From: Zygnema circumcarinatum SAG 698-1b
Taxonomy: Eukaryota > Plantae > Zygnematophyceae
Length of the DNA: 64,000 nucleotides
NCBI GenBank assembly: GCA_037447605.1
Contig: CM074809.1
Location: 186,001-250,000, forward strand
Direction: 5' to 3'
Part shown: piece after piece, positions 47,231-63,765 of the stretch
How the letters are laid out: the number at the start of each line of letters is the position of its first letter
Numbering within the stretch: the stretch's first letter is position 1
Translations under genes and position numbers: made by a program
Notes under the pieces: generated by a model
Seen by the model: only the letters and a program-made list of their open reading frames with translations
Databases searched by the model: none
Told to the model about the DNA's origin: nothing

Positions 47231-48132
47231 GCCTGGCCCTGCACTCGCCGACGGTTCGATCCCGCGACTGGTCCCATCCCCGCCGTTCATTTCCACCCTT
47301 CCGCGTCCGTACGCCCACGCCATCCGTCGTTTCCTTCCAGTTCCATGTTCACAGTCGTCCAACTGTCCGTAGGGACAGCTTTTGCAAGTGCGATTTTGGT
47401 TGACTCCAGAACCTTCTGAAACGACAAACATCGTGACCGTCCCGTTGTCGCCTTTCGCTATTATCTCCACGTGACACCATCCTAGCCGTCTATATTGCAA
47501 TCCGACGAGGACGTGGCATCATCCCAGCCGGCCATATTCTGATCCGGTCCTTTCTCGACAACAAAAACGTTTTTTCTGTTGCCCAGACAATCCAATCGTT
47601 CAGCTTGCCCAAAGCTCTGCGGGCAACCCCCAAAAACATTTTCCTCCCTGCCCGCCGCCCAGAAAAAAAAAATTCCCTCGTTTACCGTACTTTCTACTTT
47701 CCAAGAAGTGCAAGAACTCCGTACATTCAAATTTTGTACCGTCTTAAAACGACAAATGTTGCCGCCCGACGGCAGTGAGGTCGGCCAACCAGCCAGCTGG
47801 CTACTATTTTGTCGCATTAGACCGGCCGGAAGCGCAGGGCGGCTCGGGGGACCTTCGGCACTCGGAGCAGAGGGCAGGTCAACAACCAATGTGGGCTCGC
47901 CACGTGTACACACCTGCCTACGTGGATAGTTCCGGTTGGGGGAAGTCCTAGAGAGAGGCAGGCGGAGGAGGCGGGCGGGGCCGAGGGCGGGGCCGAGGGC
48001 GGGGCCGAGGGCCCTCGGGGCCGAGGCCGGGGGAGGGATAAAGAGGGAGGCAGCGGATAGGACAAGCGGTGCCGCCGAGGGAGGGGGGGGAGGGGAGAGG
48101 GAGAGAGAGGGAGGGAGAGGAGAGAGCGAGCA

Positions 48133-48303
48133 CGGGAGAGGGAGAGGGAGAGGAAGAGGAAGAGGAAGAGGAAGAGGGAGAGGGAGAGGGAGAGGGAGAG
48201 GGAGAGGGAGAGGGAGAGGGAGAGGGAGAGGGAGAGGGAGAGGGAGAGGGAGAGGGAGAGGGAGAGGGAGAGGGAGAGGGAGAGGGAGAGGGAGAGGGAG
48301 GGA
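48133..48303. repeat. (GGGAGA)n hexamer array just upstream of the protease-LysM start codon
   Basis: Near-perfect hexamer run with a few GGAAGA variants, ending about 30 nt before the ATG at 48336. Confidence 0.9.
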
Positions 48304-48335
48304 GACAAGGGGAGAGAGAGAGAGGGGGAGGAGAG

Positions 48336-51300
48336 ATGGAGCAGCGCATGAGCAGGGTGTTTTTCCTGAGCCTGGTGGGCGTGCTGACGTGGACGCAGCT
48401 GGCGGAGGGGCGGACGCCGGGTGGGCTGACCTCCCTTTCTTCTTTTTGCATTTTCTTTTTTTCATTTCTTGGCAGCGCAGTGCGGTTTCTTCCTCTTTGT
48501 CTCTTTTTTCATAGTTTTTTTTGTTTCCGTTTTGCAGGAGCGTTGCTGTCGTCATCAGTGACGGAGGTAGCAGAGAGGCCACCCCGCGCCCTGTCCTCCG
48601 TACTCTCTCTCCCCCCGTCCTCCCCTCTCTCTCTTCTTGTATGTTTTGCTCCACTCCCTCCCCCCGTCTCCCCTCCCTCTCTCTCTCCCTCCCTTTCCCT
48701 CTCTTTTTCTATCGTCCCCCCTTCCTCCCCTTCCTTTTCGTTTATTCTCTCCACCCCTCTCTCTCTCTCTCTCCCTCTCTCTCACTCTCCCTCCCTCTCT
48801 CACCCCCCCCCGGCTAATATAAGTTTTTTTTTCCTTTTCTGCGCAGACTCTGCCGGCAGACGAAGCCTTGGGTTGGCCGCGCACTTGAACTTTTCTTCCA
48901 TATTTATAAAAAAAAAAACAAAATCGCATGAACCAGATGATTGCTGCCCCGAGCTAATCCAGCTATGCGTGTTGCCCAACCCTCGGGCTCTAATTTTTTT
49001 TTTTTTTTTTCGTTCGTGACAGACTCGGATTCCGAATGGGAGCGGAGGGCTCTCATTGAAACCTCCGTCGCTTCTTTCTCAAATTCGTGGGCCATCTGTA
49101 CGCTCTTACCCCATTGGTCCTCCTCCTTGGAAAAGAAAGAAAGAAAGGAAGAAAGGAAGCCGCGCATGGCATGGCAAGATCACTTCCTTCTTGCGCAACT
49201 TGTGTACTTCTTCTTTGTTCGATCGGACATGAACCAACGGTTGGTTGCGTGGTCAATGGCAATGGCAGCCTCGAGCTGGCTGGACCCCGCGGAGGGCTCC
49301 TTCATAGTCATGCCCTCCCTCTCGTACAACGTGTGGGCCCCCTCCACCGGCGAGACCGACCCCCCCGTCGAACTAAGCAACGGTACGCCCACTCCTCCGC
49401 TCCCAATGCATTTTTCATGTTCAAGTTTGGGCCCTACTTCCTCCTTGCTAGCGGGGGAGTTGAGTTCGTTGAACCCCAAGTTGTTCATGTTGAACCCCAT
49501 GTTGAACACCAAGTGGCGCATGTTGTTGCAAGTGAGCAGATCCCAGCGGCGGCGTGGCGCTCAACGGGACGGGCGTGTGGACGCTGCAGAAGGTGCGCGC
49601 GTTCTACGCCTTCGTCGAGATGCAAGCGGGGAAGTGCCTCGACGCGGTGACCCGCGCGGTCGGCGGCCAAGTCGTGCTCTCCGGTTCGACCGACCACTCC
49701 CACTCCGCATGCATGGGCGCGTTTTTTAAGCTGCATATGACCAACTTTGTTCCTGTTTGTTGGTTTTAATTCGGGTGGATTTGGTGTGTTTGAGTGGTGT
49801 GTCAGAGTGTACGGAAGGAGTGACCCAGCTCTGGTCGGCCATAAGCACGCAGGCCTCGGACCTGAGCGTGCAGTGGATGAACGTGGGGACGGGCCTCTGC
49901 CTCGACGCCATCGACGGCGCCGCCAGCTCGCCCCTCCTCCTCTGGACCTGCCGGCGAGGGGCAAAAAGCTTGATGAGCAGCCAGCTATGGCTGCCGCTTC
50001 CTCCGTCGGCAACAACAAGGGAATCATGTGAGCCCCAAAACATCAGATTTGCAAAGCCTAGCTTCTTGTTGTTCTTGTTATTCTTGTTGTTGTTGTTAAA
50101 CATGGAAGGATATGAAATGTGTCTGTTTGTTGACTTGCGTTGACTTGGGGTTCCTGTGCTGCAGCGTTGTCGGGGCTCTCCCTGAACGCGTCCTCTAGCG
50201 CGCCCGACACGTACTTGAACGCGTTCTCGCGGCACGCGAGCTGGGCCGCCGCGGACCTGCCCGAGAGCGTGGACTGGCGGCCCCTGCTGGCGGGCGCCAA
50301 GGACCAGTCCTCGTGCGGTGAGCGCGCGATGCATGTTAGCTCTCATGCTTCCCCTAGGAACAATGTCATGCCAATGCCGTGTTGGCGCGTCCCATGGTTC
50401 ATGGCTCATGTTGGTCCACGCGCGTCCCGGCCCCTGCAGGGTCCTGCCACGTGTTCGCGGCGGTGGCGACCATCGAGGGCGCGTACAACATCCTGGCGGG
50501 CCCGCCCTCGCCCGCGTCCCTCTCGGAGCAGGCGGTGCTCGACTGCGGCCCGCGCGGCGCCTGCGCGGGCGGATGGCCGGCGGACGTCCTCTCCTGGCTG
50601 GCGGCCCGCCCCGCGGACGCCGGCCTGCCCGCCACGTCGGCGTACGGATCTTACGTCGGGCAGCCTCGGGCCTGCAAGGTAAACATTTCAACCTGCCCAT
50701 TTTGTGCCCCTCCCTGTTGCCTATACCAACCACGTGCTGCCACGTGTTGGTGACTAGTGGGACGGTTGATGTTTCATAAAAAATCTGCAATAAGGACAAA
50801 AAAGTTGGACCTTTGTCGTTTTCTCAAAGTTTGACTGTGCCGCCGCCGGCCGCTTCGAACTGGTCCGTATCGCCCGCGCGGCCGGTGTCGGCATAAAACG
50901 ACAAACAAGGAGCTTCTGAGTCTTTGCCGACTGTCCGGCAGAAGAATCCAAATCTAGTATTTATGGAATGTCGGTCACCGACATTGACTTTGTTTTTGTC
51001 GTAATTACATACGACAAAAGAAAGATTTGGGGTAATTCTTTCGTAATTCTCAAAATTTTCGGCCGTGACCTGTTAGAGCTCACGCTGGCTCATTGTTCAA
51101 CAAACGTGGTGCGGCACTTGCAGTAATTATCGTTATGTTCAAAATCCTCGGTGGCACGGTCGCGCGAAATCTGCCGAGTCACAATTTGGGCACAAACTTT
51201 TTTTTTTGTCGAGGGCAGAGGACGGGCACTCGCCGAACCGTTCGGAAACGTTTTTCATTTTGTCAACGAAATGTTTTGCCTCCTGCCCGGGACGTTTGCG

Positions 51301-53609
51301 GCCCGTCGCGCGGCTTGCACATGCGGCTGGATACTAACTGTACCTGTAACTGGGACGGTGACTAAATTTGTGAACTGTAACTGTAACTGTACATGTGTAG
51401 GAAGCCGTCCCGGGGGCCGTCCGCGTGGTACGGTTCGAGGAGGTTCCGGCGCTGAGCCCGCGCGCGCTGAGGGCGGCCGTGAGCCGGCAGCCGGTGCTGG
51501 CCTACGTCACGCTCACGGAGGAGCTGCAGCTCTGGAACTCGGTCAGCCTCAGCTTCACATGGCCATGCATGGCATGGCATGGCGTGGCATGGCATGGTTT
51601 GACATCGCGTGGATTCATGGCATGGCATGCGGCCCTGACCTCTGACCCATGGATGCATGGATGCATGGGTGCGTGCGCGCAGTGGGACATCTTCAAGGAC
51701 TCGCAGAAGGCGTGCGGCGTGGGCGCCATGCTGACGCACGTGGTCGCCGTGGTGGGGTACGGAACGGAGGGCGGCACGGAGTACTGGATCGTGCGCAACT
51801 CCTTCGGGCGCTACTGGGGGGACTACGGCGCCGCGCGGGTCATGGCGGGCGTCTGCGGCCTCCAGGCGCTGCCCGCGCTCTATCCCGTCCTCGCCCGTCA
51901 GTGCCGCACCCGTCTCTTTCTCCCTCTCTCTCTCTCTCTCTCTCTCCCTCTCTCTCTATCTCTCTTCCCCTCTCTCTCTCTGTGTCTGTTGAATAGGTCC
52001 TTTTCGGCTTTCCTCCCTTTTTTTCTCATTTTCGTTTTGATTTATGTTGTGTCCAGCTCCGGACCGCAACCCCTGCGGAGCCATCAACCCGTGCGGCGCG
52101 GGCACGTGCATTCGCGGAGAATCGCTTTCATATAACTGCAGCTGCCCGCCCGGCTATCTGCCGGTCGTCAATACGGACGGCACGCAGACATGCGCGCCCG
52201 GTACTGCCTCTTCCTTGACAAGCAAGAGGGAGGGAGAGAAAGTGAGAGAGGGAGAAAGAGAGTGGGGGGGAGAGAGGGAGCGCTTAATTCTTCCTTAAAA
52301 ACCACGAAAATTCCAATTTAAGAAAACCATAAGACGTGCGTTGAAGGGAGAGAGAGAGAGAGGGGTAAAGCGCGAGAGGAGAGAGAGAGGGGGAAGGAAG
52401 AGGAGAAAGGAAATGGTAATCCAAAAAGGAAACCAGAGGGCTTAATCCATGCACGAAAATGCAGATTGTAGCGCCTCCTCTTCCTGAATCTCTCTCCTCC
52501 TCCTCTTTTGGTTGGCTGGTTCCATGCTGTCGCAGAGGACGCGTGCGGAACGGCAACGGGAGCATGGAACCCCTGCGGCGCCGGCACGTGCGTGAACAGC
52601 GGCGACGCGCTGTACCACTGCGTGTGCTTTGCGGGCTACGCCGCCGCCCTCAACGCGCGGAGGCAGCAGATCTGCGTGCCGCGTGAGGACCCGCCCGCCT
52701 GCCTGCCTGCATGAATGCATGCCTTCCTGCATGTATGCATGTATGCATGCATTGTATGTATGTCGGCAAGCCTGCCTGCAAGTATGCATGTATGCCTGCA
52801 TCCCTGCCTGCATGCATGCCTGCCTGCATGCCTGCCTGCAGGCTCCCGGGGCAGAAATGTTTTGGTCGAGTTTGTACCTGTTTCGATTGTTGCGCTTGCA
52901 TGCCGCCGGTCGTGTGAAGGCGGAAATGAAAAGGGGAAGAGAGGAGAGGTCGACGTGAGGCAAAGGGAGGGAGGGAAAGGGGGAGAGAAAGAGAGAGAGA
53001 GCGAGAGATGGGATGGGGGAGGGGATTACTGAGGAATTAACTTTTCTTTATCTATCTCCTCCTTTCCGTTTTATTTTGTTTTTGCAGCTGCCCAGACGGT
53101 TCAAGCTCTTGAAAGCTACACAGCGGAGGCAGGAGATGACTGTTATCTGATTGCAGCCGCATATGGACTGACTGTTCAACAGCTCACAGATATGAATCCA
53201 AGAAGCGAGAGGGTGAGCAGACTCAGTCAAAGTATGCTGAAGTGTATATGGAACTGCTTTTAAAATGAAAGAATTTATAAAATGACATAACTTTCAATTG
53301 AAATACCTGTCCAAAAGAGATTTGGATTGGACGATTTCTCGCTCTGAAAGTGACGATTGCGCATATTTTTGCAGGACGTGTGTTCTCCGTTACTTGTTGG
53401 GGATGTGCTGAATGTCACAAATGCGGAGCCTTATGACTGCAAAGTTCTGTACAGCATTCAGAAGGTGAGTCCCTCCCTCCCTCCCTCCCTCCCTCCCTCC
53501 CTCCCTCCCTCCCTCCCTCCCGCTCTCTCCCTCGTAAACTAAGTCAATCTCTTGGTCTCCGTTTCTCTCTCTCTCCCTCTCTCTCTCTCTCCCTCTCTCT
53601 CTCTTTCTT

Positions 53610-53647
<38 letters not shown>

Positions 53648-54940
53648 CTTTCAGAACGATTCGTGTTCCGGCATTGAGAGCAAGTTCAGCCTCCCCCCTT
53701 CTTCCCTCAGCGCAGTTCTGAACCCTGCTGTCAACTGCTCCGGCGATTCGACCCTCACTCCGGGCCAACAGGTGAACATAAAACAAAGCTTATTTAAAGA
53801 AAACTCATTGTGTTCTTTACCTTCGTTTGTAAACCTATCTCGTATTCAAGCATAGTATTGGTTTGAACTTGCTGAAACTGAGCCCCCTAACGAGTGGACC
53901 TTTCCTTGCATCCTTTTTGCAGGTTTGCATTGTGAGTGGGCAGCCGGATGCGACAAAAGTATGTACGGCGAGTGACCGCGTTACATCATCTGATGTTGCG
54001 AGCGGAGGATGTGACCAAATGCTGCTCCGAAACACGCAGATCAACATCACCACCTTCTATGAAATGAACCGCGGAATCAACTGCCAAAATCTCTTCGTTG
54101 GGCAGGAGGTGAGAGAGAGAGAGGGAGGGTCGGCATTTTTAACACACGAAAAAAACTGATGATGGGGTTCGGAGATTGAAGTTTGTCAATCTTGAGAGTT
54201 TTTAGGGACTTTGAAACGCAAATCAATGTCTTTGCAAAGAACTAACATCTGCCTTCCTTCGCTGTCTCTCTCTCTCTCTCGCTCCCTCTCTCATCTTTCT
54301 TCTTCGCAGCTGTGTGTGGGATATCAGCAGCAGCCACCAGACACTTGCGCAAAATATTATGTCTGGCAAAGAGGCGATACATGCTACTCCGTAATCGCTC
54401 TGTTCTGTGGAACGAGGTCAAACAAACGCTGGTGAGACTGCTTGAACACAAAACTTTGTATAAGAACGGAAAATATCTATTTGCAAAATTTATCTTGATG
54501 GTTGTCGTATCAAATTGTTTTGGTTATATTGTATATTGGCCAACTTTCCATCAATCAAGGACATACTTTAATATGCCGATATTTGCTTTACTGATTAACA
54601 AACTATGAATGGCCCCTCCATTCTATTCCAGAACATTGATGTGTTCGCATGCATCCATGCATGATTCAACTAACTAACTAACTAACCAACTAACCAACTA
54701 ACCAACTAACTAACTATCTATCTATCTATCTATCTATGTTTATCTATGTTGATGTTGATGTTGTGGTTGTCTATCTATGTTGGTTGCATGGAGGAGTGCA
54801 GGCCCGAGTGTTTTCCCGGTAGCGAGGTTTGCGTCGGCACGGGCAGTGCATGGCCCGCCGGTAAAGGGTTCTGCGTGCCGACCTGCTTCAACTACCTCGG
54901 GGTCAGGGTCACCAGAGGGGTAGCGAACTGCTTTGGCTAA
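48336..54940 (+). CDS. Secreted multidomain protein: signal peptide, ricin-B-like lectin, papain (C1A) cysteine protease, 2x EGF, about 4x LysM, Cys-rich tail; about 18 exons
   Basis: Signal MEQRMSRVFFLSLVGVLTWTQLAEG. Ricin-like GKCLDA...QLW and GTGLCLDAIDG...QLW. Protease LPESVDWR...KDQSSCGSCHVF...LSEQAVLDC...CAGGWP...[55 protein letters not shown] and [20 protein letters not shown]. LysM YTAEAGDDCYLIAAAYGLTVQQLTDMNP, YSIQKNDSC...LTPGQQVC, FYEMNRGINCQNLFVGQELC, YYVWQRGDTCYSV. Splicing of exons 2-4 and of the last exon is less certain. Confidence 0.85.
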
Positions 54941-55010: not shown

Positions 55011-55020
55011 NNNNNNNNNN
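55011..55020. other. Assembly gap (10 N) between the protease-LysM gene and the orphan kinase exon
   Basis: Run of n inside a GA tract; true length unknown. Confidence 1.
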
Positions 55021-56073: not shown

Positions 56074-57279
56074 ATGAAGGGCGGAAGGTTTTTTAACTAG
56101 CTCTTCTTGTTCGTTTTACTTTGTTGTTTAATTCTGTTAATTTAAAAAAAAAATGGGTTATTTATTGGAGGAGATGAGTGAAGAGAGGGAGAAGGGAAGA
56201 GAGGGTAGAGGGAGAGAGAGAAGAGGAGGGCAGGTCACGGTATGGACATCCCTTCGACTCGATCTTGTTAATGCGAACAGAGGCAAGCAAAATGTACCCA
56301 TTTTTAGTTTCTAGGTTAATTCTTTAGAGGAGGTAGAAGGCAGATTTTTGGTCCACTTTCGCAATTATTTAAAAATAACAGTGAGGAAAATAGAAAGGGC
56401 AGTCGAGAAATAGTGCAGAGGCTCGGTTCTCGCAGTCCTTGTCGAGAGAGAGAAGAGAGTAGAGAGAGTAGAGAGAGAAGGGATACGTGAGAGAGAGAGA
56501 GAGTGGAGGAGGACTAGAGGGTCTGGAGGGCCTCCTCCTCCTTTAGAAAGGCAGAGCCCACAACCCCACAGGGGCCTCCCTGTTCACCTTTAGAGAACCA
56601 TGTGCTTTGGTCGATATGGCATTCACACTGCGCTTGACTTGCGAGTGGTTTGGTCTTTCATGTGACCATATTTCGCTAACAATGTGTTCGAGCTTGTGGC
56701 ATGGCATGGTGCGGATGGCATGGCATGGTACGGATGGCATGGCATGTCTCTAATGGTGTAACATCCATTCAGCTTTCATTTCACCTGTTAGGAACTAGAC
56801 ATCATAGCCATGCCATGCCATGCCATGCAATGTGCGAACAACCATGTTGTGGAAATGGTCCACACGCCAAAGGCCGAGCCTAGAGACAGCATGGGCGCCA
56901 ACCTCCCCAACACGATGGCATGAATGGCATGGATGGTCCTTGCCGAGCCTCCCCCACCTCCCCTCCCTAGCGCCCCTCGTGGGGAACCCCAAGAGTTTCG
57001 AAAACTTGAAAAAATTGTCCTACCACGACGTGCATAACAAAACGACGTGACGTGACGTGACGTGACCCGTGATGTCGTACCCTAAAACCCTGAGCAGGTG
57101 GGTTCGTTCTGAACCCTGCGCCCTCTCCTTCCTGCCCGCTCACGCAAAGGGCGGAATCCGGAGGGGTTTTAAAGGGCCGCCGCCGACCCCTGCTGGTGCC
57201 TCCCTCGGCGGGGACGGATTAGGGTTTAGGGGAGGATTAGGGTTCAAGAGTGGATTAGGGTTCAGCAACCGCCTTGGCC

Positions 57280-60200
57280 ATGGCGGCGCTCCACGCCCCC
57301 CTCGCCGCTCTGCGCTCCGACGCCCTGCTGTGGCGGGAGAGCACGTCCGCCCTGCCACGTGGCATGCAGGTAGCCTGCCAGCTGGCCGGCTCCCAGACCT
57401 CCGCCTTCCTCGTCAGAGAGGAGCCCTCGGCCGCAGCCGCCGCACTCGTGCCGCGCCGGAGAGCGCCACGTGTCCACCTGACTCCTTGCCACGTGTCCAA
57501 CTCCGCCTCCTCCCCCCCCTCCCCCTCTCCATCCCCCTCTCCATCCCCCTCTCCCTCTCCTTCTCCCTCTCCCTCTCCCTCCCTCTCCGCGGTGAAGCGG
57601 CCCCTCTACCACCCCAGCCGCATCTCCGACCCGAACTATGTCCGCATCTTCGACACGACCCTCCGCGACGGCGAGCAGTCCCCCGGGGCGACGCTCACCA
57701 GCAAAGAGAAACTCGACATAGCGCGGCAGCTGGCGAAGCTGGGAGTCGACATTATCGAGGCCGGCTACCCGCTCGCTTCTCCCGGCGATCTGGAGGCCGT
57801 GAAGGGCATCGCACGGGAGGTGGGGTGCCAGGTGTCAGCCGATGGCTATGTCCCCGTAATCTGCGCCCTATCCCGCTGCAACAAGGCGGACATAGACGCG
57901 GCGTGGGAGGGCGTGAGGGGCGCTCTGAGGCCGCGCATTCACACGTTCATCGCGACGAGCGCGGTGCACATGGAGCACAAGCTCAGGAAGACGCCGGACG
58001 AGGTGGTGAGCATAGCCGCCTCCATGGTGGCGTACGCGCGGAGCTTGGGGTGTGAGGATATCGAGTTTAGTCCCGAGGACGCGGGCAGGTAAGGGAGGGA
58101 GGGAGGGAGGAAGGAAGGGAGGGAGGGAGGGAGGGGAGGGAGGGAGAAAGGGAGAGAGGAGTGATAGTGGGGGGAGGGAGGAGTGATAGTGGGGGGAGGG
58201 GAAGCGGGAAGGGGGAAGGGGAGGAGAGGGGAGTTGGGGAGGGGAGGGGAGGAGGGAGGTAGGGAGGTGGAAGGAGGTAGATGGGGGAGGGGAAGGGGAA
58301 AGGGGAAGGGGAGGAGAGGGAAATGGGGAAGGGGGGGGGGGGGAAGAGGGACGTAGGGAAGGGGGAGAAAGAGCGGGAGAGGTGGCGATGGCGATGGCGG
58401 GCGAGGAGGGAGTGGGTGGGCATGGGAGAGGGGAAAACGGGGGGGGATGGAAGCGGATTGAGTAGGGGAAGGGGAAAGGGAGGGGGACGAATAGGAGGTG
58501 GGATGGGGGGAGGTGGAAGGAGGAGGTTCAGGAAAAGATGTTAGTGTTGAAGTTGAAGGGTGCGAGAGGGGGAAGGGTGGAAGGTGGGGAAGGGGGAAGC
58601 AAAGGGAAGGAGTAGGAGAAGGAGAAGCTGAAAGGGCGAGGGAGGAGGGGGAGAGGGAGTCGGAGGCTAAAGGGGAAATCGCATCTTCTATCAATTTCCT
58701 CTTCTGTATGTACCTTTCCTTTTTTTTCCCATCCGACGTATCTCTGATTGGAATGTGGTGCTCCTCCGCAGGTCTGATCCGGAATTTCTGTGTCGGATTT
58801 TGGGAGAAGTTATAAAGGCAGGCGCCACGACTTTGAATATTCCCGACACTGTGGGGTACTGCATGCCCGCGGAATTTGGAGAACTGATCGCATATATTAA
58901 AGCGAATACGCCGGGGGCCGAGAATGTAATTATTTCTACGCATTGTCAAAATGACCTCGGCCTCGCCACAGCAAATACCTTGGCGGTGAGTTTTGTCGCT
59001 AAAAACTCGAAGCTCGGCATAGACATTTTTTTTCTTCTGATTTTTTTTGAAGATGTGTGTGTAGCGTAAATTCGATTATCTTCACTTTTTTATTCGTTTG
59101 CTGATTTTGGCACGTGGCAAGCTTGCAGGGGGCCAAGGCCGGGGCTCGCCAGCTGGAGGTTACGATCAACGGAATTGGAGAGCGCGCAGGGAACGCCTCG
59201 TTGGAGGAGGTATACTTGTTCTTGTTCTATAAGAAGATTAAGGGAGAGAGATGAGTATAGTGGAGGGAGACGGAGTGAGGGAGAGGGAGGGAGTCAAGGA
59301 AAGAGAGCTTTTTAGGCGTTTAGGGCTTTTTAGATTTCTTAATAATTAAGTCGTTTTGAATTTGCAGGTGGTAATGGCGATCCGATGTCGCGGAACGGAG
59401 CAGTTTGAGGGTCTTTACACTGGAATAGATACTCGGCATATCACCAAAGCTTCACGCATGGTGAGGTTAAATCCTAAAAAGCTTTTTAACCTTAAATCTT
59501 CGTTAAAGATTTTCAAAGGGTCCTGCGACCAACAAACCAACCAACCAACCAACCTTGGAAAACCTTCAGTTTTTTCAACCTTGAAAGCACGAACTTTTTG
59601 AAGCTATAAATTAAGACAAAAGGGGAGTTTTAGGGAAGACTGAAAAGGGCCTAAGGAGGAGGGTACAATGTAATGACAAACTTATAATTTTCCATTTTTT
59701 AAGTGGGAGCCAATGGGAGGTGGACAGGTGGCAGAAAGCACGGGCATGATGGTGCAGCCCCACAAGGCCATTGTGGGAGCGAACGCGTTTGCACATGAGA
59801 GCGGGATTCATCAGGTCAGAACTGAGCCTCACACTTGGAACCTTTCTCTGTTTGAAATATCATTGTGTGAACTGGAATCTATACATATATATTCATATAT
59901 TAGCGAACGTGTCGAGAATGTACGTTCAAAATTTGAGCGAAGAATTGAAGTAGATATACCTTAAACAAAGTCTCTCAGAAGCCTTTATCTTCTCCTCTCA
60001 CCACTCTCTCTTGCATCACTTAGACCTCCCCAATTCCAGGATCTAAGATTCTTAAGACATCTAGCCTTCTGCAATGTTAGGGTTCAGAAAACTGTAGAGC
60101 TTTAGGGCTCAGAATTTCAAGGTTTTGGTGGTGTACGTGTGCAGGACGGCATGCTGAAATTTAAGGGCACATATGAAATTATTTCTCCGGAGGACATTGG

Positions 60201-62545
60201 TCTTGTGAGATCGGACGAGGCCGGACTCGTGATGGGCAAGCACAGGTGCTGCCTTCGAGCCTTGTAGCGGAACCGATATCCAAATCGATATAATTTTTTT
60301 TTTTAACAGTTTCAAAGGAACTCATGCTCAAAATGATGACGAATGTTTTCTAAATTTTAGTCATTTTCTATATATTCATCTCTGCCCCTTTTCCGCCTTT
60401 CTGACTTTCTTGCAGTGGGCGCCATGCACTGAGGACACGACTTCAGCAGGTAACTGCACTGCATGCTGCTGCTACATACATGCAATCCTCGCTCTCTGAC
60501 TCCCTCCTTGTTCCTTCCTTTCTTCCACTCTCTCCTTTCTTTCTCTCTCTCTTCCCCCTCGGCCCCCCTCTGCCTCCCTTCCCCTCTCTCTCCTGTCCCT
60601 CCGCTCTCTCCTACTTTCTCCCTTCCTCTCTCCCTTTGCCCCTCCCTCTCTGTCCCTTCCCCCCTCTCGCTCTCTCCCCCTCTCTTTCCCTCTGCCCCGC
60701 TCCTCTTCGCTCCCCCTCTCCCTCCCCTCCCCTCTCTCCCTGTGGCTGTCCAACCTTACCTGACCTAATCTAAGTCTCTTGATGGGCCACAGCTGGGCTA
60801 TGAATTGGAAGCAAAGGAGCTCGACGATGTATTCAAACGCTTCAAAGCCGTAGCAGACAAGAAGAAGGTTTGAAATTTTGACCTAATCTTAAATGAAGTG
60901 CTGCATGAGAGATATTCCTCATTTTCTCATCCAAAAAAAGCAATGTAGACTAACGATTTTTGTACTTCTCTGCTGTGTCGTCAGAATCTGCAAGACGAGG
61001 ATCTGGAAGCGCTGCTTTCTGATGAAGTCTTTCAGCCGGAGGTTGTGTGGCGCCTTGCGGACTTGCAGGTGATGCGAAAACAAAAAAATGTTAGGGTTAG
61101 AGAGAGAGAGGGAGAGAGAGTGAGAGAGAGCGGGAGAGAGAGAGAGAGAGAGGGGAAGACAATGGTGGGTCCTATATTGCTTCGAGTTTGTCAGGCTTAG
61201 GATCCCAAGAATGGAACGATACTTAATATGTTTTGTTTATTTTTTTGTAAAAAATGGTCTTTTTGCAGGTGGTTTGTGGAACTATGGGGCTGCCGACCGC
61301 CACAGTTAAACTGATTGGCCCCGACGGAATGGAGCATGTGAATGTGGGGGTGGGGGCGGGCCCGGTGGATGCAGCCTACAAGGCCATTAATAACATTGTG
61401 AAGGTGAGGAAGAGAAAGGGAAGGAAAGAGAGAGTGAGAGAGAGAGGGATCGGGAGAGAGAGGGGGAGAGAGAGATAGAGGGAGTGGGGGAGAGGGAGGG
61501 GGGAAGGGGGAGGGAGGGGGAGGGGAGGAGGGGAGGGGAGGGAGGGAGAGTGGCCTGGCCAGGGGGGCGAGGCGGGGCGAATGGGGGGAGAGGTGATGAA
61601 TGGGGGGTTGGTAGGCGGGCAAGGAGAGCAGGGCAAGCGTTGCAGGAATAGGAGCCTGACGGAATCACAGAAGAAAAAGAGCGGAATTGACCCTACAGTT
61701 GCAGTTTAGAAAAAACAGAAAACCCCAAAACTCAAACCCTAAGGACCCAAGCCCTAACATCCACAACACACACCCTCCGAGTGTACAACCACCCTGAGCC
61801 CCCCTAAACCCTAAACCCTGAGACTTGAGCCCTGACCCCTCTCTCCTCACCCCTCACCCCTCACCCCTCACCCCTCACCCCTCACCCCTCACCCCTCACC
61901 CCTCACCCCTCACCCCTCACCCCTCACCCCTCACCCCTCACCCCTCACCCCTCACCCCTCACCCCTCACCCCTCACCCCTCACCCCTCACCCCTCACCCC
62001 TGAACCCTGAACCCTGGGTGGGCGTGCAGGCGGAGGTGGCCCTTCAGGAGTACTCGATGACGGCGGTGACGGAGGGCATCGACGCCCTCGCGTGCACGCG
62101 CGTGCAGATCCGCCTCCTTGAGGAGGCGCCCGCCGCGGTGCACGCGCAGAGGGGCGCCGTGGAGAGGAGCTTCAGGTACTGGCCATGGGGGGGGTAAAGG
62201 CTTTAGGGTTGTTAGGGTTTTTAGGGTTTCTAGGGTTTTTAGGGTTTCAAGGGTTTCTAGGGTTTTTAGTGTTTTAGAAAATGAACTGGGGGGGGGGGGG
62301 GAACTAATATGACTCTCGAGCGCTTAGGAGCTGTTTGCAATTTTTTCTGATTTGCCAATATTTGGACGAGTTGTTGATGACGTGGCGCCATCCCATTGGC
62401 TGGCAGCGGGAGCGGTGCTGACGAGGACATCGTGGTGTCGAGCGCGCGTGCTTACATCAGCGCCATCAACAAGATGTTGGGCTTCCTTAGATCGCGCAAG
62501 ACTGAGAGTGTGGAGGCGAAGGAGCCCCAAGCTGTGGCTCAGTGA
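57280..62545 (+). CDS. IPMS: 2-isopropylmalate synthase (LeuA), plastid-targeted, with C-terminal regulatory domain; 12 exons
   Basis: Ala/Ser/Pro-rich transit peptide; [16 protein letters not shown]; IHTFIATS; SPEDAGRSD; IPDTVGY; [14 protein letters not shown]; [14 protein letters not shown]; [23 protein letters not shown]; [12 protein letters not shown]; [13 protein letters not shown]; [22 protein letters not shown]; stop at 62545. Confidence 0.97.
61802..62015. repeat. (CCCCTCA) about 22 copies, flanked by CCCTAAA and CCCTGAA units, in an IPMS intron
   Basis: Perfect 7-nt period from about 61845 to 62000, with telomere-type heptamers on both sides. Confidence 0.93.
62191..62270. repeat. 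Telomere-like TAGGGTTT(T/C) array with a 9-10 nt period in an IPMS intron
   Basis: About 7 TAGGGTT cores. Confidence 0.8.
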
Positions 62546-63765
62546 GAGAGGGAGAGAGGGAGAGTGGGAGAGAGGGCAGGTGGGTGGGCAAGGAGAGAAA
62601 GATATGAGGGAGGGAGGAGATATATTAGTGAGGGGGGGAGGGAGGGAGGGAGGGAGGGAGGGAGGGAGGGAGGGAGGGAGGGAGGGAGGGAGGGAGGGAG
62701 GGAGGGGTAGTGGAGGAGGGAGATCGTAGGTTGTTAGGCCCGTATCTTAAAGGTTGAAAGATTGTTTGCTTTGGCTAGGATGCCGCAGCTATGCTTAGAG
62801 GGAGGTTAATTATAAACTTATATCCACGCGTAGTTAAGAAAGTTGTTTAGTGGCAAAATAATTCAAAAATGAGACTGCTGCCCCGGAGGTTGTAGGGTGT
62901 GAAGGGTTGGGAGGGCTTGAGCATGTTGCACTTTATGAAGGATAATTTCCCCATGCTTTTGTAGAGACGTAGCATGACCCCAAGTGTACGATACTCTCCT
63001 TTTCGCTTGCAGCAGAACAAATGGTTTGTATTTTTTCGACAATTCTCCACTGAATGTGTATGTAAAACTCGTCGCTTTTCGGTGTCACGGATTGAACGTA
63101 AGTCTCCCTCTTGTCTCCTCTCCTCTCCTCTCCTCTTCTCTCCCTCTCTTCCTCTTATCGTCCTCTCCCTCTCCGCCCCGCAACAAAGACTAGTCTACAA
63201 CGTGAGAGCTGCCACGGCCCTACAATTTCGTCGGTTGGTCGGTTGGTCGGTTGGTCGCCCTGCGTAGGCCGTCAAAGAGAGAACCAAGTCAACGATTCAA
63301 ATCCAATCGATGCCTAAATTTTGCCAACCATTGGGTGACGAATATAAGATCGTATCCTATTCTACCTTTATTATTATTATTTTCTTTTTTCAAGGAGAAA
63401 TGTGAGGATTGCACGCTTTTTTCAATTTTCGCTGCTCAGCCCTTTCTCCAAGGCCACAAGCAGCGCTAGCCGCTCATGCACCTGTCACCCCCCCCCCCCC
63501 CCTTCCCAATATAATAAATACAAAATGTTTTACATCAATCAGCCTAATCTATTGAGGGAGCTAACGGCAGTCTGTGGAGCTCGGCTTTGAAAAGAGGGGC
63601 TTTGACATCGGCTTTCACAGCGCACTAAGTGTTGGGAAAGGCGCCTAGCCTGCAGGCAGACGAGAGTGAGGGGCAGAGAGAGAGACAGACAGAGAGAGAG
63701 TGGGAGAGAGTGGGGAAGGAGAGAGAGATATGTTCTACTCATTTTCCATCATGAGTGCTTCTGAC

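Follow-up and report, generated by a model that had tools for sequence, protein, structure and literature searches.

Positions 48,336 to 54,940 (plus strand) of the window, a 64,000-nucleotide stretch of contig CM074809.1 from Zygnema circumcarinatum SAG 698-1b, appear to hold a single intact nuclear gene whose product would be a mosaic protease, secreted, rich in disulfides and tethered to GlcNAc polymers and to a second glycan; we put the probability of this reading at about 0.6. The exon chain, rebuilt by hand and by script, comprises 16 exons and 15 introns, all of the latter with GT-AG borders, and it sustains a single in-phase reading frame of 793 codons in which the frame is kept at every junction, as the initial annotation had proposed for this interval. 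The locus therefore looks like an intact 16-exon gene, and we infer a single transcript from 48336 to 54940. The predicted protein starts with a signal peptide, continues with a ricin-B/CBM13 trefoil, a C1A protease, a pair of EGF modules and four LysM-like repeats, and closes with a Cys-rich end. These parts are distributed over the exons as follows:

48336..48420, plus strand: exon 1, the ATG and a probable signal peptide of 25 residues, assigned by eye (positions -3 and -1 are small, and RTP follows), ending in phase 1; read directly, GC3 0.96, donor G/GTGGGC.
49269..49382, plus strand: exon 2, putative ricin-type trefoil subdomain 1 (WLD...NVW); phase-1 acceptor fitting exon 1, GC3 0.92.
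49540..49683, plus strand: exon 3, putative ricin trefoil subdomain 2 (GKCLDAV...VVLS); GT-AG, in phase, GC3 0.96.
49806..50027, plus strand: exon 4, the end of ricin subdomain 2 (C...QLW), subdomain 3 (GLCLDA...LLLWTC...SQLW) and the first part of a linker rich in Pro and Ser; Pfam Ricin_B 17.8 bits, under the cut-off; CBM13 of PDB 1knl, E 1.6e-5; lectin domain of GalNAc-T10, E 9.5e-4.
50165..50317, plus strand: exon 5, linker without I29, leading into the mature protease (LPESVDWR...KDQSSCG), with the oxyanion-hole Gln (CAG) at 50305-50307; no Pfam family at E up to 10, colinear with other C1 peptidases.
50440..50678, plus strand: exon 6, the part of the protease that carries the catalytic Cys (TGC) at 50445-50447 in CGSCHVF; Pfam Peptidase_C1 E 3e-11; ananain E 2e-7, Cys aligned to Cys25.
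51401..51541, plus strand: exon 7, middle of the protease; colinear alignment, GC3 0.94.
51683..51896, plus strand: exon 8, C-terminal lobe of the protease with His (CAC) at 51737-51739 and Asn at 51797-51799 (YWIVRNSF); Pfam E 1.6e-12; actinidin E 4.9e-13, His and Asn aligned.
52057..52200, plus strand: exon 9, EGF module 1 (six Cys); Pfam EGF 22.2 bits, cut-off 21.5, and Cys count.
52536..52682, plus strand: exon 10, candidate EGF module 2, also with six Cys; 20.9 bits with Pfam EGF (cut-off 21.5), self-similar to EGF1.
53088..53212, plus strand: exon 11, LysM1 except for its last third; 27.8 bits with Pfam LysM (cut-off 20.9); PDB 4uz2 E 1.1e-5, LytE E 2.9e-5.
53375..53464, plus strand: exon 12, which completes LysM1 and opens the putative LysM2; in phase, GT-AG, no HMM match alone.
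53655..53771, plus strand: exon 13, remainder of the putative LysM2 (NDSC...LNPAVNC...PGQQ); similar to LysM3 (z 4.2), no HMM match alone.
53923..54108, plus strand: exon 14, candidate LysM3; Pfam LysM 19.6 bits against 20.9; weak match to the LysM of a fern chitinase-A, E 0.16.
54310..54431, plus strand: exon 15, first half of a short putative LysM4 (YYVWQRGDTCYSV); similar to LysM1 (z 5.8).
54802..54940, plus strand: exon 16, end of LysM4 (PGSEVCVG), Cys-rich tail and the TAA stop codon at 54938-54940; in phase.

The weakest junction of the gene model is 48420/49269, which links the signal-peptide exon to the first ricin exon. Exon 1 joins the latter in phase only via the acceptor at 49269, which is the one that we prefer; its pyrimidine tract is poor, and this counts against the model. 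An extension of exon 1 to 49023, which would give a protein of 876 aa, was dropped, as the sequence upstream of exon 2 (49025-49267) has a GC3 of only 0.59, versus 0.92 in exon 2 itself. A 29-nt candidate exon at 48538-48566 was likewise dropped, since no acceptor after it is both in phase and backed by coding signal. Alternatively, the gene may start at the ATG at 49230. At the other end, no further coding signal was found between exon 16 and the next gene at ~57250.

On sequence grounds, the assignment of the predicted protease domain to C1A is firm. Peptidase_C1 (PF00112) matches two pieces with scores of 44.3 and 48.5 bits (Pfam cut-off 20.7), and the domain is spliced from four exons that are colinear with intronless C1 peptidases. 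The best solved relatives of the catalytic exons are plant papain-like proteases, and their catalytic residues are aligned: the equivalents of Gln19 (in KDQSSCG), Cys25, His159 and Asn175 are all present in the alignments to ananain and actinidin, and reading of the codons shows that the initial annotation had placed the Cys, His and Asn codons exactly and had rightly named the Gln. Additionally, an ESM Atlas look-up with the Cys exon returned C1 clusters only. Two substitutions lie close to the active site: His, rather than the usual Trp, directly follows the catalytic Cys, and NSW is replaced by NSF; because of these, protease activity is not certain. Moreover, neither an I29 nor a cathepsin-B-type propeptide was found, as neither 50167-50316 nor the linker between ricin domain and protease matched any Pfam family at E values up to 10, and the intron at 50028-50164 is too short for a hidden exon. 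Papain-like enzymes normally need their prodomain for folding; with no I29 prodomain, both folding and latency must be managed in another way. It is conceivable, as a matter of speculation, that the lectin head or the 43-residue linker serves in its place. A C1A domain with intact catalytic residues but no I29 raises a concrete biochemical question, namely that of folding and latency.

The modules on either side of the protease are less uniformly recognized, and the ricin, EGF2 and LysM3 calls must be regarded as borderline. The Pfam runs were done on stop-free pieces, and the ricin domain, which spans three exons, scores 17.8-18 bits with Ricin_B (PF00652) on single exons against a cut-off of 29. 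Solved CBM13/ricin lectins nevertheless match the ricin exon, namely 1knl (with its three subdomains) and GalNAc-T10 (2d7i), and a xylanase CBM13 is among the PDB matches; the repeat motifs also recur three-fold, as WLD..NVW, CLD..QLW and CLD..QLW. The two EGF modules claimed at the outset hold up: each has six Cys, and with PF00008, EGF1 passes and EGF2 lies just under the cut-off. With LysM (PF01476), LysM1 passes and LysM3 falls just short; in the PDB search, the relatives of LysM1 are LysM modules from chitinases and from endopeptidases of bacterial walls. LysM2 and LysM4, both of which span introns, resemble LysM1 and LysM3 (z 3.8-5.8, internal similarity only); LysM4 is a truncated module, and the AF2 fold of the LysM3 exon is poor (pLDDT 46). 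The proposal of about four LysM modules and a ricin-B head therefore stands in part: by domain HMM, LysM1 is secure and LysM3 borderline, LysM2 and LysM4 are recognized only by their likeness to the other repeats, and Ricin_B is below its cut-off, yet is matched by solved lectins.

The protein is probably secreted via its N-terminal signal peptide. As had been suggested, it appears to lack a membrane anchor: nowhere in the protein does hydrophobicity reach transmembrane strength (the maximum KD19, 1.61, lies inside the protease), and the C-terminus is polar. The Cys counts per module (four in the ricin domain; seven in C1, corresponding to three disulfides plus the catalytic Cys; six in each EGF; and 18 in the LysM region) fit an extracellular protein, and there are seven N-x-S/T sequons.

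From this domain content we infer secretion, sugar specificity, proteolytic activity and a target surface. The signal peptide would direct the protein to secretion; the LysM array at the C-terminus, which is of the eukaryotic type with Cys inside each module, would grip GlcNAc-containing polymers, for example the chitin of parasitic fungi or chytrids or bacterial peptidoglycan; the N-terminal ricin-B/CBM13 trefoil would provide a second glycan grip; the EGF pair may act as rigid spacers; and the papain-type domain, with its Gln, Cys, His and Asn, would cleave proteins at the tethering surface. By analogy with characterized modules, docking on GlcNAc polymers by LysM and on another glycan by the ricin module would be a reasonable expectation.

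The same molecule could instead be aimed not at microbes but at wall or mucilage glycoproteins of the alga itself, acting while its cells grow, divide or mate, which we consider possible, if clearly not the favoured account. To our knowledge, GlcNAc polymers, the ligands of LysM, are not known from the walls of these algae, and this counts against such a target. Supporting it, plant glycans of the Gal or xylan type are frequent ligands of ricin/CBM13 modules, in line with the xylanase match here; N-glycosylated cysteine proteases occur in zygnematophyte secretomes (PMC6027541); and the only physiological report found for an algal C1A concerns sex-pheromone induction in Volvox (PMC2474614). The systems with which to compare an own-wall role would be the chlorophyte wall-lysing proteases.

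Two further alternatives bear on the gene itself. That two or more adjacent genes have been joined by eye, for example a lectin-protease and a separate EGF-LysM gene, might be suspected from GC3, which falls from ~0.9 to 0.4-0.7 at the LysM exons; however, an identical dip occurs within the neighbouring isopropylmalate synthase gene, so that it is no mark of a gene border. Moreover, only 160-405 nt of intron separate the exons for protease, EGF and LysM from one another, every junction is in phase and GT-AG, and those for EGF and LysM begin in phase 1 or 0 and have no ATG or signal peptide of their own, all of which makes a composite highly improbable. Only a little more credible, and still very unlikely, is that one copy of a large gene family has fallen silent or begun to decay here, unexpressed and intact by chance: the truncation of LysM4, the unusual substitutions beside the catalytic residues and the failure to find the protein in the protein collection (within the length ranges searched) would be compatible with decay, but 793 codons run without a stop or frameshift, the splice sites are all intact, the GC3 of the coding frame stays strong and Cys parity is exact in every module. 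A single intact gene for a secreted, glycan-tethered protease remains the preferred reading.

The homology searches retrieved no orthologue with the same join of domains, either from the protein collection within its length limits or from a metagenome scan. In the former, 51401-52132 matched a single cathepsin L at 41 bits (proteins of up to 427 residues), and 50358-50750 gave no match (proteins of up to 229 residues); these blanks say little, because the limits exclude a protein of ~800 residues. In the latter, the His/Asn exon found 19 loci, all of them ordinary C1 peptidases that have neither ricin nor EGF nor LysM modules in their vicinity.

Fusions of Peptidase_C1 and LysM have been catalogued for Chlamydomonas in 2009 and 2019 (PMC2728734; PMC6362431, Table S3), where they are uncharacterized; the catalogue lists none for Klebsormidium, Chara or land plants. 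Those of the chlorophyte Chlamydomonas reinhardtii likewise place a papain-family domain before two or three LysM in one polypeptide, and some also have EGF or other lectin modules; their partners, in contrast, are galactose-binding-like, SRCR, WSC and C-type lectin domains, and none has a ricin-B head, an EGF pair and four LysM. By domain content, the locus is a further member of this catalogued but unstudied algal C1A-LysM kind. As lists of green-algal proteins have included the protease-LysM join since 2009, it adds a layout rather than a new principle, and the novelty is moderate, the new part being the ricin-headed arrangement, which has no LRR block. The suggestion that the architecture had not been characterized was accordingly too strong, given these fusions and the Volvox C1A, whereas the exact set of ricin-B, C1A, two EGF and four LysM was in no paper that we found.

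Further likenesses lie in bacteria and in land plants. In bacterial wall endopeptidases of the LytE/LytF type and the Thermus proteins 4uz2 and 4xcm, LysM similarly tethers a papain-fold cysteine peptidase to a GlcNAc polymer; these differ in that the catalytic domain is of the NlpC/P60 (C40) rather than the C1A kind, the LysM are N-terminal, the substrate is the peptidoglycan stem peptide, and ricin and EGF modules are absent. With land-plant enzymes of the ananain, actinidin, ficin and RD21 type, the protein has in common its four catalytic residues (Gln, Cys, His, Asn) and the Cys pairs that form three conserved disulfides; these enzymes, however, have an I29 prodomain and at most a granulin, whereas the protein here has no I29, lectin modules on both sides, His after the catalytic Cys and NSF for NSW. 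If it is active and secreted, an alga near the root of the land plants would couple glycan recognition directly to proteolysis; land plants split these functions between LysM receptors and free papain-like proteases. It is tempting, but rather doubtful, to extrapolate that streptophyte algae keep a repertoire of prodomain-less papains with exchangeable heads (here ricin-B) on a constant EGF2-LysM4 foot, a soluble 'recognise-and-cut' arm of immunity against chitin-walled parasites that land plants would have lost or exchanged for LysM receptor kinases and free PLCPs.

A pheromone-induced C1A protease is also on record from Volvox carteri (PMC2474614). The chlorophyte VcPap-11, induced by both pheromone and wounding, is an algal C1A outside the cathepsin B, F, H and L groups. 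VcPap-11 (Amon et al. 1998) reportedly carries chitin-binding modules.

The DNA around positions 48336-54940 (+) of the window is eukaryotic and rich in introns, and the protein modules are recognizable in stop-free pieces of the plus strand. Exon borders were set from GT/AG dinucleotides, and the in-frame joining of the pieces was then checked. The eight exons of 52057-54940, which run from the first EGF exon through the stop codon, form a single open frame, and the first three protease exons likewise join in one frame; donors 50027 and 51896 are, at their respective sites, the sole in-phase GT with a good consensus. The final model comprises 793 codons in 16 exons, with 15 GT-AG introns spanning 122-848 nt, and by its sequence the locus appears to be a real-looking, intact gene. 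The initial annotation had described a lectin–protease–EGF–LysM fusion, and this architecture is borne out by the module order of the rebuilt gene. A 10-N assembly gap lies at 55011-55020, ~70 nt past the stop codon and within a GGGA/GAGA tract, so that the 3' UTR is discontinuous in the assembly.

The protease matches the Pfam Peptidase_C1 model in two pieces (44.3 and 48.5 bits). The exon carrying the catalytic Cys aligns to ananain (E = 2e-7) and that carrying the His and Asn to actinidin (E = 4.9e-13), in both cases with the catalytic residues in register; the coordinates initially assigned to these residues match the rebuilt chain exactly. Moreover, once spliced, the domain aligns colinearly with metagenomic C1 peptidases that lack introns, which supports the four protease exon borders. 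The catalytic Cys is followed by His (CGSCHVF), and NSF is found in place of NSW. No I29 or other propeptide was found by Pfam in the stretch leading from the lectin to the start of the mature protease, and there is no room for a hidden exon ahead of the protease because the intron there is 137 nt.

When single exons were searched, the ricin module scored under the Pfam cut-off; the exon of its third subdomain matches all three subdomains of a Streptomyces xylanase CBM13 (E = 1.6e-5), and also the lectin domain of GalNAc-T10. Each of the two EGF modules has six Cys, and one passes the Pfam cut-off, the other narrowly missing it. Scored from part of its length, LysM module 1 exceeds the cut-off, and it matches LysM modules found in bacterial wall endopeptidases and in fern chitinase A; module 3 is narrowly below the cut-off. 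Modules 2 and 4 are interrupted by introns, and their support comes only from comparison with modules 1 and 3 (z = 3.8-5.8 against shuffles); module 4 is missing the middle helix region.

Exon 1 (48336-48420; GC3 0.96) encodes what looks like a textbook signal peptide and ends in phase 1. The phase-1 acceptors into the ricin frame include 49023, 49179 and 49269, of which the last was chosen because 49025-49267 has a GC3 of 0.59 and contains an AG-rich tract. The model is least secure at this junction. Translation may instead start at ATG 49230, which likewise yields a hydrophobic leader.

The GC3 is 0.79-0.98 in exon 1 and the ricin, protease and EGF exons, and 0.41-0.76 in the LysM exons and tail; for the introns, G+C over all positions is 0.34-0.61. 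A scan for GC3-rich open windows recovers the exons from the signal peptide to EGF2, with the exception of EGF1; its only other signals up to the next gene are the (GA)n tract that precedes the ATG and a stretch in intron 2 (49383-49539). The latter (49427-49561, +, frame 2) has a roughly 12-nt repeat, and no in-phase join links it to the ricin exon that follows.

The lower GC3 of the LysM exons relative to those preceding them could mark a second gene. However, the next gene downstream, a multi-exon 2-isopropylmalate synthase gene (57250-62700, +), behaves likewise, with a GC3 of 0.86 over its first exons, 0.5-0.7 in its middle part and 0.96 at its end, and we therefore read the fall as a property of this genome's genes. 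That 48336-54940 is one gene is suggested indirectly by the short gaps separating the protease, EGF and LysM exons, by a phase that is continuous across all exons, by the EGF/LysM part having no start codon and leader of its own, and by exact cysteine parity. With respect to the latter, every module has an even number of cysteines except the protease, whose seven are predicted to form three disulfides plus the catalytic Cys. Sequencing runs matched to the region contain 27-49% of the sampled words, and none is recorded as RNA.

After the putative signal peptide, the protein has 41 Cys in total; it contains seven sequons and, across its encoded length, no hydrophobic window of transmembrane strength. 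The most likely working model is that of a secreted protease that would be tethered to glycans through its LysM and ricin modules; its target may be microbial, or it may be the matrix of the alga itself. Chlamydomonas has proteins that combine Peptidase_C1 and LysM, and land plants have lost them (Zhang et al. 2009; PMC2728734). Six C1A and LysM architectures have been listed in Chlamydomonas and none in Klebsormidium or Chara, and vascular plants did not retain such fusions (Van Holle and Van Damme 2019; PMC6362431). Among algal C1A proteases, a functional report was noted for VcPap-11 of Volvox only, which is induced by pheromone (Martinez and Diaz 2008; PMC2474614). A 2025 chimerolectin review makes no mention of a natural lectin–papain fusion, and a literature search joining LysM, Zygnematophyceae and cysteine protease found no report. 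The gene is a new layout of an algal fusion already catalogued but unstudied.

Microsatellites occur in the flanks and introns at:
48100-48330
48600-48800
51560-51660
52690-52850
53470-53650
54660-54730
56550-56900
The repeat directly before the ATG is (GA)n; (CATGG)n-type repeats are found both within an intron and in intergenic DNA, and the others include (CT)n, (TGCCTGCA)n, (CCCT)n and (CTAA)n.
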